Of a stretch of DNA of 62,000 nucleotides, positions 11,816 to 62,000 are shown in pieces. The stretch spans positions 43,544,001 to 43,606,000 of the forward strand of contig OX597822.1 of the NCBI GenBank assembly GCA_951406725.2. The letters are read 5' to 3'. The stretch comes from Octopus vulgaris (Eukaryota). Positions within the stretch are counted from its first letter, which is position 1; every line of letters starts with the position of its first letter. The notes below the pieces were generated by a model. It was not told where the DNA came from. It saw nothing but the letters and a program-made list of their open reading frames with translations, and did not search any database. Both the position numbers and the translations under genes were made by a program.

Positions 11816-12562
11816 GTGACGTGTATTTATAAGACATACGAGTGAACAATGAACAAGGTCATTGACATGCCGAGGCGTTTCGGCCTCTTTATGCGTCACC
11901 TCAGCTATAACGCCGGACCTATGAATCTGACATTAACAAGAGTCCTTGTTGTTAGGAATCAGCAAACATAATATTTGCTGATTTTTACGGATGCTCGCCA
12001 AATAGATAAGAAATCCTGAGGTGCAGGCAGAACGGTGAAAATCCAAATAATAACGTATCTATTGATACTTGACACGTTCTGACACATTAGAACGTGAATA
12101 TCTTATGACTGTTGTTTAACGCCAGTGGATAACACATCCTCCCTTTAGAGAATCTCTATGCACAATAAATAGAAACATTTTGGCGCCTAACCCTACACTG
12201 GTAAATTGTGAGTACGTCTAGAGGAATAGGTGTTCTCCGATGAAGAAAAACATCAGTAGTTAGATATTCACAGTGGGTTCTACTAGAACGTATGAAGTAT
12301 AAATACTTTACTGATTGTAATCTGTTCTCCTTTCATCATATGATCTATATATCTGTCTATCTATCTATCTATCTATCTATCTATCTATCTATCTATCTAT
12401 CTATCTATCTATCTATCTATCTATCTATCTATCTATCTATCTATCTATCTATCTATCTATCTATCTATCTATCTATCTATCTATCTATCTATCTATCTAT
12501 CTATCTATCTATCTATCTATCTATCTATCTATCTATCTATCTATCTATCTATCTATCTATCT

Positions 12563-13422
12563 TGGGGATTGGTGGAGTACGACAACTATCTCGGGGCGAA
12601 CCAGGGCGTCGACAATGAATACCTGACCAGCCTGTTGAAGACGACTTTCGGGTTGAGACCTATGGACAACTTCCAGAGATCCCTTGCCTGGCTGTGCTAA
12701 CAAGAATCGCTACCTGTTCCGTATAGGCTCTACAGGCATGGCTTGAGAAACACAGGACCGACCTGCCCGAGATGCGGTCAGAGCAACGAAACCGTCCTGC
12801 ACGCAGTGTCCAACCATTTCCGACCTGTGGGCTTACGTCGAACGACTGCTATCGCGTGTGGTTTATCAACCGAGTCTATCGTGAATATTATCGCGTCTCT
12901 TTCCTTGAAACGGGAAGGAAGAACTATTTTCATCGTACTTGTGGCTATGGCGAAAGAATCTGTATTGTGGACGCGTCTGAGAGGGCTAGAGACAAACACG
13001 TTCCTCTCTAGTCAATCTCTCATCAACTTCTTCAAGTATCACTTGAAGAGGAAGGTGAGGGAAAAGAGGGAAGTTTTGTCTAGTGAATGTTTAAAAAACA
13101 GATGTGAATGACGGAGTCAGCTTGAGCATAATCTTATGAACCCAAAAAAGAAAGGAAAAAAGAGAGTCACTAACTGTAATATGTTTTTTTACATGACATT
13201 ATTGCCCAAGGTTACCGTGGTCATTTCCGTAGGTTTTTCTTTCCACCAATAAACCTAATCTGTTTTCCCTTGTTACATTATGACATTTCTGAGACACACG
13301 ATGCCTAATGATCGGCTTTTTTTTCCACGATCCCCTTTTTTTTCTCTTCATCCCCAAAAGAATCGCTCTACTTTGTATTTTGTCCCCTTTGTGTTCAGCC
13401 CTGTGTGTGCAATAAAGAAACA
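12563..13422 (+). mobile_element. Tx1/L1-like LINE copy A, 5'-truncated, between two (TATC)n arrays
   Basis: Degenerate C-terminal region with GPTCPRCGQSNETVLH; ends AATAAAGAAACA|TATC; (TATC)n 12343-12562 upstream. Confidence 0.92.
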
Positions 13423-14059
13423 TATCTATCTATCTATCTATCTATCTATCTATCTATCTATCTATCTATCTATCTATCTATCTATCTATCTATCTATCTA
13501 TCTACCTATCTATCTATCTATCTATCTATCTATCTATCTATCTATCTATCTATCTATCTATCTATCTATCTGTCTATCTGTCTGTCTGCCTGTCTGCCTG
13601 CGTGTATGTCTGTCTGTCTGACTGACTGCCTGTCTATGTATGTATGTATGTATGTATATATGTATGTGTGTATCTATCTATCTATCTATCTATCTATATA
13701 TATATATATCTATCTATGTATATATCAATCAATCAATCTATCTATCTATCTATCTATCTATCTATCTATCTATCTATCTATCTATCTATCTATCTATCTA
13801 TCTATCTATCTATCTATCTACGGACGTGCTGTCATTTCGGCTCCGAAGGTAATCGTTTATTTTGACTATTTATAGCCCATATTTTGTGTACATTTTTGTA
13901 AATAAGGTGTGTAAGGCACCCAACTTTCGTTTGAGTGCTTTTCCAAGGGAGGAATTCGCCCCTAGGGGCAGTTTCAACCCTATTTAATTTGTGTAATTTT
14001 CTTCTCGACATTAAAAAATGTCGAGAAATTTTATTGTAGAACGCTGGTCGCGTTCCTTT

Positions 14060-15887
14060 ATGGACCAGCATTTAGCTCGTCTGGAAAGCTAGGAGAAAAA
14101 AAGAACTTATGCACGCAAAGTGCAAACCTGAATGACGTGGTAGTGAACGCTGCAACCACTTGCGGTAACAGCCCTGTCACCACTACCACCACCACTAACA
14201 ACAACAACAACGAGACTACTGCTGCTACCACCACCACCACCACCACCACCACCACCACCAACATAAATGATAAAAATGAAACTCACACGAATACTATTAA
14301 CAAAAACAACAACAACAAGAGCAACAATAAAATGAAATAAATATCTTACTATCTCATAGTGAAGACGTTAATATAAAAGAATCAACAACACCAGTAAATT
14401 TCGCTTACACTCTGCGTCAGAAAAAAGAAATAGTAAAATTTACGAATGAAGAGTTAATAGAAACGAGAGCACTCTTTACATCACAAGAGCAGGATTTAGT
14501 GCTGCATACACCTCAACACATAAAGGAACAAATAGAAAATAAGACAATTATACACAAAATTATAAGAAAAAACAAAAAAAACAAAATGAACAGATTACAA
14601 AAACGGACATAGAAAAGTGTTTAAAAAGCATAATGAAAAAAAAAGAATATATAAACTGGGGTCCCCAGTTTAATACAGTGGTGGTCCGCTTCCATAACCA
14701 GGAAGTAGCAAAAGCTCACTCTACGGAGTCTTTGCAGAATGATGAGATCATTATGGTACCTTACTACAAAGGCCAGAGAGTGAGTAGAATTACTATTAAA
14801 AATGTACCCCCTGAGATTCCTAACAAATGGATAACAGGGGTAATCTGTTACCATTTGAAAACTATAGAGGCAGCAGTATACCAAAACGACAATTGGGGTG
14901 GAAAAACAATAGTAGTGACCATCCAGATTGAGGGGTCCTCAATCGAGAACCTACCTGATAGGATCCACTTAGAAAATGGACAAAGCCTATATGTTGTAGC
15001 AGAAGGCAAAAAGCCTAGATGCTACAACTGTGGCAGCCCAGAACATTTAATTGCCAAGTGCGCTCTGGCACAGAAAAAAAACAAGAAAGAACAAATCAGA
15101 AAACAAATAAAAAACCCTTGTTGCCAACACCAACACCAACACCAACACACTCAATTATGGAACAATGCCAAGAAAAACAACAAACCAGCAAACAAACCCC
15201 AAATACATCACCAAGAAAAAAACTACCAACACAATCGCTGTTGACGTCGCAACCAATTCAACATGCTGAACCAACAAAAAATAGACCAACACCAACACCA
15301 ACACCGAGGACGACAATTAAAAAGACAGAAAACAGTGACGAGAAGACAAATTCTACCCCTAACACTACAACAACACAAACACCGCACAAAACATCAAGAA
15401 TTTCTACAAGCATACATATTAACGCAAATGCTTTGCCTTTACCCCTTTCTGATTCGTCGGACGATGAAAGTTCGACGGAATGGCAAATAGCCACAGGGAG
15501 TAAAAGGAAAAGATCAAAAAAAGCCCACCAAACAAGGAAGTAAAGCAGGGAGATATTTAACTCCGGACAGCATCCCCCTAGACAATAAAAAAAATCAATG
15601 AACCCGCAAAACCACACACACAACTGACTGCAATAGACACAGACAATAAAAAATTAATGGATTACATTGCATCCAACACGGACATCTGTGAATATGACTT
15701 TAAGACAAACAATAATACGCGCACCACACCACCGAAACACATAAGAATTGTACACATAACACAAACACAACACCATACACTGAAAACAATATTTTCAAAT
15801 GCGGTAGGCGGGTTTCAACGATACCTCTCCAAAAAACTATACAAACACCTCATCAAAGACACTACAAAAGAAGAAGAAAAAAAATGA
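14060..15887 (+). pseudogene. ORF1 (gag-like) of copy B, frameshifted
   Basis: CYNCGSPEHLIAKC (CX2CX4HX4C) preceded by an RRM-like region (VVVRFHN...RITIKNVPPEIP); Thr/Asn/Ser-rich low-complexity ends; several frameshifts, start inferred. Confidence 0.8.
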
Positions 15888-15975
15888 AACTTTCGAAATG
15901 AGTAAGTGACCTCCCCTCTTGCCTCTTGTCTCTTCCAATGTAGTGTGTGAAACGCAATTTTCGTAAACGTCAATT

Positions 15976-61083: not shown

Positions 61084-61221
61084 TTGTTCTTTTCTTCCTT
61101 TTACGATCCCTCTTGATCGAAAACCTACGCCGCCCCCCTTTTTTTTCATCCCCCAAAAGAAAAGCTCTACCTTGTAACTTGTCCCATCTGTGTGCAGCCC
61201 TGTGTGGCCAATAAAGAAACT
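61084..61221 (+). mobile_element. Tx1/L1-like copy E, 3' UTR only, between (TATC)n arrays
   Basis: Nearly identical to the last 140 bp of copy D; ends AATAAAGAAACT|TATC. Confidence 0.85.
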
Positions 61222-61414
61222 TATCTATCTATCTATCTATCTATCTATCTATCTATCTATCTATCTATCTATCTATCTATCTATCTATCTATCTATCAAT
61301 CTATCTATCTATCTATCTATCTATCTATCTATCTATCTATCTATCTATCTATCTATCTATCTATCTATCTATCTATCTATCTATCTAACTATCTATCTAT
61401 CTATCTATCTATCT

Positions 61415-61601
61415 CAAAAAAAAAAGGAAAAAAGAGAGCCACTTACTGTAATGTTTTTTTTTACATGACACTATTGCCCAAGGTTCCCGTGGTCTTTTTT
61501 CTTTTTTCTTTCTTTCATTTTTCTCTTCTTCCCAAGGAGAAAAGCTCTACTTTGTATTTTGTCCCTTCTGTGTTAGGCCCTGCGTGTCCAATAAAGAAAC
61601 A
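61415..61601 (+). mobile_element. Tx1/L1-like copy F, 3' UTR only, between (TATC)n arrays
   Basis: Matches the copy A 3' UTR type (GGAAAAAAGAGAG.CAC.TACTGTAAT...ACATGACA.TATTGCCCAAGGTT); ends AATAAAGAAACA|TATC. Confidence 0.85.
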
Positions 61602-62000
61602 TATCTATCTATCTATCTATCTATCTATCTATCTATCTATCTATCTATCTATCTATCTATCTATCTATCTATCTATCTGTCTGTCTGTCTGTCTGTCTGT
61701 CTGTCTGTCTAACTATCCTTCGACCATTCTATCTGTTTCTCTATCTGTCTATCTCTGTATTTTGTCTGTCTATTTGTCTATCTCGATTTGTACATTTGTA
61801 CACGCATATATCTCTACATATATATGCGTTTCTATAAATAGGCATACACACATGCACGCACACATACACCCATACACACACATACATACACACACACACA
61901 CACGTTTGGGGCTTCGTGTCTCAGCTAGAGACTATTACGTAATTATTTGTAATCCAATTATCAGTGAATTATTATCAAATTTAATTGTCTCCTCGCAAAG

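Follow-up and report, generated by a model that had tools for sequence, protein, structure and literature searches.

A 62-kb window of Octopus vulgaris DNA (the whole stretch analysed here, 62,000 nucleotides of contig OX597822.1) contains six copies of a single long interspersed nuclear element (LINE) family, five of which have arrays of the tetranucleotide repeat (TATC)n at both ends. Our preferred explanation, held with moderate confidence, is that this Tx1-like LINE integrates by target-primed reverse transcription, preferentially into existing (TATC)n arrays of the same orientation, with the repeat tail of its RNA pairing with the array. The evidence comes from the junctions of the six copies, from the DNA around the arrays, and from the 3' ends of related elements.

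Copies of the element and their junctions

The window is eukaryotic DNA with a G+C content of approximately 37% and an extremely high content of microsatellites. BLASTN searches of copies B and C against the window, together with direct reading of the junctions, identified one LINE family with six copies (A to F), all on the + strand. The copies and the arrays that adjoin them are listed here (ORF, open reading frame; UTR, untranslated region; RT, reverse transcriptase).

12356 to 12562, + strand: (TATC)51 array directly 5' of copy A, with unique DNA further upstream
12563 to 13422, + strand: copy A, 5'-truncated, containing the C-terminus of ORF2 and the 3' UTR; end AATAAAGAAACA
13423 to 13820, + strand: compound array A-B, at once the 3' array of A and the 5' array of B; (TATC)20 TACC (TATC)16, (TGTC/TGCC)n, (TATG)n, (TATC)6, (TA)n, (AATC)3, (TATC)20
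13821 to 19727, + strand: copy B, full length (5.9 kb), with a 5' UTR of about 0.8 kb; end AATAAAAAGAT
14633 to 15244, + strand: ORF1 of copy B, with a CCHC knuckle
about 15976 to 19419, + strand: ORF2 of copy B, broken by at least three frameshifts and one in-frame stop
19728 to 19812, + strand: (TATC)21 array 3' of copy B, followed by (TG)n and (TA)n
36418 to 36515, + strand: (TATC)24 array directly 5' of copy C, with unique DNA further upstream
36516 to 40171, + strand: copy C, truncated inside the endonuclease domain, coding for endonuclease, RT and zf-RVT, with two frameshifts at about 37720 and 39720; end AATAAAGAAACA
40172 to 40193, + strand: short (TATC)5 array 3' of copy C
57237 to 59433, + strand: copy D, truncated in the RT, 92% identical to C, reading frame broken; end AATAAAGAAACT
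59434 to 59496, + strand: (TATC)15 array 3' of copy D, followed by (TA)n
61008 to 61082, + strand: (TATC)11 AATC (TATC)6 TA array directly 5' of copy E
about 61083 to 61221, + strand: copy E, the last 140 or so nucleotides of the 3' UTR, D/C type; end AATAAAGAAACT
61222 to 61414, + strand: (TATC)19 AATC (TATC)21 TAAC (TATC)6, the 3' array of E and also the 5' array of F
61415 to 61601, + strand: copy F, the last 190 or so nucleotides of the 3' UTR, A type; end AATAAAGAAACA
61602 to 61711, + strand: (TATC)19 running into (TGTC)n, 3' of copy F, with a compound structure like that of element-free arrays

The 3' ends are alike in all six copies. An AATAAA sequence is followed by five or six nucleotides and then directly by (TATC)n, with from 5 to more than 40 units and no poly(A). 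The boundary takes three forms, each immediately followed by TATC: one in A, C and F, one in D and E, and one in B, as given in the list.

The 5' ends of A, B, C, E and F lie 0–2 nucleotides from a + strand (TATC)n array, and this is the case at very different points of truncation. The 5' arrays contain 17 to 51 units at A, B, C and E, and 6 units at F. Arrays of TATC on the + strand make up 3.4% of the bases outside the element, which gives a probability of 2.5e-7 that at least five of six 5' ends would adjoin one. A conservative count, which accepts only the 5' arrays of A, C and E because these are not the tail of another copy, gives three of four loci and P = 1.5e-4. The junctions are therefore as described in the original prediction, both in that six + strand copies end in AATAAA and then TATC with no poly(A), and in that five of them start directly after (TATC)n. 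It had also pointed to a common 3' register. The register is indeed constant, but it is uninformative on the precision of cleavage, since a templated tail would give such a register anyway.

BLASTN identities are 80.5% between B and C, 92% between C and D, and 75.6% between A and C, and in the UTR F matches A while E matches D and C. This confirms the proposed division into diverged subfamilies (B, C/D/E, and an A/F UTR type). Synonymous divergence (dS) is 0.63 between B and C and 0.19 between C and D, with ratios of non-synonymous to synonymous divergence (dN/dS) of 0.16 and 0.22, respectively. The copies thus descend from active, selected lineages that kept the TATC association, and the claim that the association is conserved across subfamilies holds up, the B and C lineages having diverged under purifying selection.

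Domain structure and classification

Pfam identifies a zf-CCHC domain in ORF1 of copy B, and Exo_endo_phos, RVT_1 and zf-RVT domains in ORF2 of copies B, C and D. The N-terminal domain of ORF2 is an apurinic/apyrimidinic endonuclease (APE), which matches Exo_endo_phos with E = 2.2e-12 in copy C and, using phmmer, the L1 endonuclease structures 1vyb, 2v0s and 8sp5. The endonuclease motifs VNVRG, SET, GDWN, LDRIL and DHK are found in both B and C. The RT matches RVT_1 with E = 9e-33, and its best match in the PDB is human L1 ORF2p (1e-38, compared with 1e-19 to 1e-20 for R2). The C-terminal zinc domain, CX2CX8HX4C, matches zf-RVT with E = 2.6e-7, and its motif CPRCGQSDETALHAIVQC aligns with Tx1 CPFCGKG-ESVFHAYFTC. 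In ORF1 of copy B, the knuckle CYNCGSPEHLIAKC matches zf-CCHC with E = 7.9e-4 and 19.9 bits, the cut-off being 20.8, and there is no Pfam match to Transposase_22. ORF1 proteins with a CCHC knuckle or an RNA recognition motif have been linked to Tx1-like elements of non-mammalian animals (PMC5203782).

For comparison, Xenopus Tx1 ORF2 (YTX2_XENLA, P0205), from the type element of the Tx1 clade, was retrieved by a search seeded with a turtle match. The RT of copy C shares 34–38% identity (235–273 bits) with Xenopus Tx1 and the related turtle and fish proteins, and 27% (147 bits) with human L1; Tx1 and human L1 are themselves 26% identical (157 bits). A maximum-likelihood tree of RT sequences, which has a single L1 reference and no outgroup, places three clades together opposite a very long L1 branch. 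These are the window clade (copy C, P0001 and Argonauta P0002), a clade of further relatives, and the vertebrate Tx1 clade, and the window clade is not nested within vertebrate Tx1.

These sequence comparisons support the view that the LINE is an APE-type non-LTR (long terminal repeat) retrotransposon of the L1 group, which comprises L1 and Tx1, and the label Tx1-like appears reasonable. The endonuclease, RT and zinc domain matches thus agree with the original prediction of an APE-type LINE of the L1/Tx1 group. Its more specific assignment to Tx1 is upheld only in part: the RT is closer to Tx1 than to L1, but in the tree the window clade lies outside the vertebrate Tx1 proteins. Many L1-Tx1 families have been reported from octopus genomes, without mention of their targets.

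Related elements and their 3' ends

Among named relatives of the element at the protein level, the best is from Argonauta hians, an octopod. The window copies have a conserved 3' terminus of about 75 nucleotides, ending ...CTGTGTGCAGCCCTGTGTGGCYAATAAAGAAAC, which is followed by TATC repeats and not by poly(A). A relative from another sample (L018), of which the 3' junction only is seen, has an intact ORF2 of 1148 amino acids and 83% nucleotide identity to copy C. It ends AATAAAGAAATC(TATC)n with at least 12 units, and the tail is therefore no peculiarity of the window locus.

Other relatives carry other repeats after the same conserved terminus. This is (ATT)n in L005 (2000-2105, at least 33 units) and in a copy from Argonauta (L017, 6160-6210, 4–5 units), both close relatives with approximately 70% amino acid identity; no (ATT)n was seen upstream of the L017 copy. 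In view of these (ATT)n tails, Dong/R4 was considered as a classification of the window element, and was ruled out by its N-terminal APE, its zf-RVT C-terminus and the order of its domains. A full-length copy from Argonauta (L001), which ends ...GAAATCTATTTTT, is flanked by a target-site duplication of 10–17 bp in AT-rich DNA. This copy has two 3' UTR ends in tandem (L001:10013-10662), at about 10280 and 10660, with about 134 nucleotides of unrelated sequence between them, and both lie within one pair of target-site duplications.

Argonauta also contains a tRNA-like short interspersed nuclear element (SINE) of about 157 bp. Its last 35 or so nucleotides are common to the LINE (...GGCCCTTGTGGCTAATAGAGAAATCTATTT), and it ends in ATCTATTT, a terminal motif found in L001 and in the SINEs. 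There are five SINE copies in the 10.8 kb of L017 (1-366, 6831-6863, 7814-7857, 10196-10236); two SINEs are in direct tandem, with a full-length LINE directly after them, head to tail. A more distant relative (L003/L004; ENA ERZ21867824, ctg122906l) has 45% amino acid identity and an intact ORF2 of 1153 amino acids, and at least three copies of it lie head to tail, separated by neither a spacer nor a microsatellite. The terminal 35–75 nucleotides or so are conserved across the relatives.

The relatives that end in (ATT)n or ATCTATTT, the target-site duplication of L001 and the terminus shared with a SINE together indicate that the repeat is a lineage-specific tail encoded by the element, and at the level of sequence the terminal repeat behaves as such a tail. 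In this clade, insertion tends to occur at sequences matching the element's own 3' end.

Protein and DNA-pattern scans of metagenome contigs gave no relatives, or nothing beyond chance matches to bacteria. The genome_contigs and viral_contigs sets yielded no DNA-pattern matches, and a protein scan of genome_contigs with P0010 was likewise empty. The contigs that encode other close relatives (L002, L006, L007, L015, L016 and L019-L022) are mostly short, and do not extend past the end of the element. P0010 itself is a fragment of the LINE deposited as a protein of a 'Herbaspirillum sp.' metagenome-assembled genome, and probably represents host DNA that was assigned to a bacterial genome during binning.

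Origin of the arrays

The arrays flanking the copies could be older or younger than the insertions. We infer that they existed first and were then split by the element. Upstream of the 5' arrays of A, C and E lies unique DNA and no older copy, which means that these arrays are not the tail of any element that can be recognised. On the 3' side, the arrays of A and F continue into (TGTC)n, as do the element-free compound arrays at 2630 and 44858-45069, and they look like natural arrays that were split. At the truncation point of copy A there is a microhomology of 5 nucleotides, TCTAT, between the parent sequence and the array. This is as expected of a 5' junction made on array DNA, and it points the same way.

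Arrays of this kind are common in the window. Of the 31 tetranucleotide arrays with at least five units, 23 belong to the AGAT/TATC class (1560 bp), 22 of these lying on the + strand. Among element-free TATC arrays, such a bias was considered as a meaningful feature and discarded: once the arrays attached to elements and the duplicates are set aside, it comes down to some 5–6 independent loci against 1, which is not significant. The element-free arrays include a paralogous pair at 56334 and 60625.

Other repeats are found in the same part of the window. A duplicated segment (56263-56595 and 60554-60970, 78–98% identity) contains no LINE sequence but has an array of its own, (CATC)n(TATC)16-21, together with a run of (AC)n; it represents either a local duplication or a further repeat family. 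A 58-nucleotide match joins 59778-59835 to 60772-60827. There is a foldback inverted repeat, resembling a miniature inverted-repeat transposable element, at 56810-57189, about 45 nucleotides upstream of the 5' end of copy D. Its arms (56810-56948 and 57051-57189) are 139 nucleotides each and 76% complementary, with a spacing of 102 nucleotides. Elsewhere in the window, ARAGORN calls a tRNA-Thr (anticodon CGT) at 32026-32098 on the + strand, which may be a gene or the head of a SINE.

A model for integration

On the basis of these observations, we propose the following series of events. The element transcript would end in UAUC repeats, inside the downstream array. AATAAA is only 5–6 nucleotides before the array, and cleavage would thus fall within it. 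The bottom (GATA)n strand of a target array would be nicked, and the 3' end of this strand would pair with the UAUC repeats of the element RNA and so prime synthesis of cDNA. The new copy would then lie between the upstream and downstream parts of the array, wherever reverse transcription happened to stop on the 5' side. The tails of older copies would be equally good targets, which would produce the head-to-tail pairs A-B and E-F. The analogy is with the 'snap-velcro' model of L1 priming, in which pairing of the poly(A) tail with a T-rich nicked target favours priming.

According to this model, the site would be selected by pairing between RNA tail and target, either in place of endonuclease specificity or together with it. 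Such pairing accounts for the 5' arrays no less well than would specificity of the endonuclease. A stronger form of the model, which we put forward tentatively and consider possible rather than likely, is that the RNA and not the endonuclease sets the target, so that the tail repeat, (TATC)n here and (ATT)n in the sister lineages, directs integration by base pairing. If this were true, the element would be a natural RNA-programmable LINE, retargeted by a change in its tail motif.

A number of points weigh against the proposal that the element prefers existing (TATC)n arrays. The sample is six copies in one window plus the single external 3' junction of L018, and neither A and B nor E and F are independent with respect to their tails. 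TATC arrays are unusually abundant in the window, and this local context may inflate the association. Copy D has no TATC array at its 5' end, where the flank consists of unique DNA and the foldback repeat; either the association is not absolute, or an upstream array was lost when the 5' junction was formed. None of the six copies in the window is intact. The L001 site in Argonauta adjoins (TA)n(ATTT)n and has no TATC array, and its ordinary target-site duplication implies that the clade is not ancestrally TATC-specific. No conserved stem-loop was found at the 3' end, RNAalifold predicting no pairs for 11 termini, and the conservation of the 3' terminus is at the level of sequence only. Finally, three of the five 5' junctions have the phase TATCTA immediately before the element, a constancy that is not significant (P about 0.4, counted by hand). 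The phase was considered as a sign of specific top-strand cleavage and was rejected on these grounds, and there is thus no support from it for a sequence-specific cleavage of the second strand.

Alternative explanations

The best of the alternatives, although we consider it unlikely, is that the site is chosen by the APE endonuclease, which would itself recognise and nick (GATA)n/(TATC)n, as is thought to occur in R1, TRAS and the Tx1 clade, with the downstream array being target DNA and not a tail of the element. This would account for the association on both sides in five of six copies. Target choice in the Tx1 clade has been attributed mainly to the endonuclease (PMC4494074), and the catalytic motifs of the endonuclease are conserved here. 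However, relatives with the same terminus end in (ATT)n or ATCTATTT, one of them with an ordinary target-site duplication, so that the repeat follows the lineage. The Argonauta SINE shares this terminus as well, which points to recognition and priming at the 3' end rather than recognition of DNA. Nor do the junctions help this explanation, the constant 3' register being uninformative and the 5' phase, from the hand count, not significantly constant. The original prediction of a GATA-specific family must therefore be divided: the association with (TATC)n within the window stands, but specificity of the endonuclease is not established, given the relatives with other tails.

A second alternative is that the element has a TATC tail but inserts at random. 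The 5' arrays would then come from a jump of the RT to the UAUC tail of a second RNA, followed by slippage, or from earlier insertions of tails alone. The repeat does act like a tail in the relatives, and template jumping would also yield head-to-tail sets, such as A-B, E-F, the SINE-SINE-LINE series of Argonauta and L003/L004. TATC is in addition the dominant tetranucleotide repeat of the window, nearly all of it on one strand. Against this, the 5' arrays of A, C and E are 17–51 units long with no element sequence upstream; there are element-free arrays with other flanks, including the pair at 56334 and 60625; and the arrays 3' of A and F pass into (TGTC)n in the manner of free arrays. With random insertion, the 5' adjacency has a probability of only about 2.5e-7, and a special event would be required at five of six insertions. 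We regard this explanation as improbable.

The suggestion that the arrays arose after insertion, by expansion of the tail followed by unequal crossing-over, gene conversion, segmental duplication or misassembly, is more improbable still: microsatellite-rich DNA is prone to recombination and assembly errors, and the duplicated segment at 56263-56595 and 60554-60970 has a TATC array of its own, but recombination within arrays would not place breakpoints exactly at five different positions within the element, the arrays (at most about 200 bp) are short relative to long reads, the microhomology of copy A fits an original insertion junction, and copy E is about equally close to C (87.5%) and D (88.6%). 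This last result, together with an array that is absent from D, rules out E as a deleted duplicate of D within the duplicated segment. Both the random insertion of tailed elements and later rearrangement fit the data less well than does pairing of the tail with an existing array.

Comparison with known elements

LINEs that insert into microsatellites are known from several clades. In the Tx1 clade there are families with (TC)n, (TTC)n and (TTCC)n/(TTTC)n as their specific targets (PMC4494074, PMC3812793). Others are Waldo and Mino of the R1 clade, in (ACAY)n and (AC)n, Dong in (TAA)n and Togen in (TG)n (PMC3812793, PMC4640811), and some HERO families are also microsatellite-specific. The criterion used for a microsatellite-specific LINE is more than 20% of copies genome-wide (PMC4494074). 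No LINE family targeting GATA/TATC was found in the searchable literature, Repbase being outside that scope; the original prediction had likewise named none.

The most similar systems are Kibi and Koshi of teleosts and the crocodilian (TTCC)n/(TTTC)n Tx1 families, compared here by their descriptions rather than their sequences. They too are APE-type LINEs of the L1/Tx1 group with a single microsatellite on both sides. Their repeats are TC-rich and their hosts are vertebrates, whereas the window element has (TATC)n/(GATA)n and a mollusc host. A further difference from Kibi and Koshi is the presence of other terminal repeats in close relatives of the window element, suggesting that the target is set by the tail and not by the endonuclease. 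Tx1L of Xenopus laevis has the same order of domains in ORF2, with an RT identity of 33–34% over 460 amino acids (236 bits), and its C-terminal CX2C...H...C motif aligns with that of the window element. However, it inserts into the DNA transposon Tx1D and not into a microsatellite (PMC4494074).

Outside the L1 group, the RTE, L2/UnaL2 and CR1 LINEs likewise have a short tandem tail instead of poly(A), after a conserved 3' terminus that is shared with SINEs. The tail repeat has been proposed to influence the site of priming (PMC6007223). Unlike the window element, the copies of these LINEs are not usually embedded at the 5' side in arrays of the tail motif. Dong, Waldo, Mino and Togen are likewise microsatellite-specific, but Dong (R4) and Togen (NeSL-related) have a restriction-like endonuclease after the RT, and Waldo and Mino are R1-clade elements. 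In the window element, the APE is N-terminal and the RT and zinc domain are of L1/Tx1 type. Human L1 provides the closest solved structure, and target-primed reverse transcription with an APE nick is common to both models. It differs in having a poly(A) tail, an ORF1 of the Transposase_22 type, a weak preference for TTTT/AA, and an RT that is only 27% identical to that of the window element.

Implications

The window LINE adds a new repeat motif to a known habit, and is not a new kind of system. A family associated with (GATA)n/(TATC)n in a mollusc widens both the list of motifs (TC-rich, AC, ACAY, TG and TAA) and the list of hosts. For annotation of the genome, it matters in practice that many of the TATC arrays here are bounded by ends of the element, and microsatellite markers at such loci will therefore share flanks. 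A LINE family of this kind may also help to explain the abundance and the strand bias of the TATC repeat in such genomes. The sister lineages with (TATC)n and (ATT)n on one terminus are a natural pair for testing pairing of the tail against specificity of the endonuclease, a question that bears on the design of site-directed retrotransposon tools.

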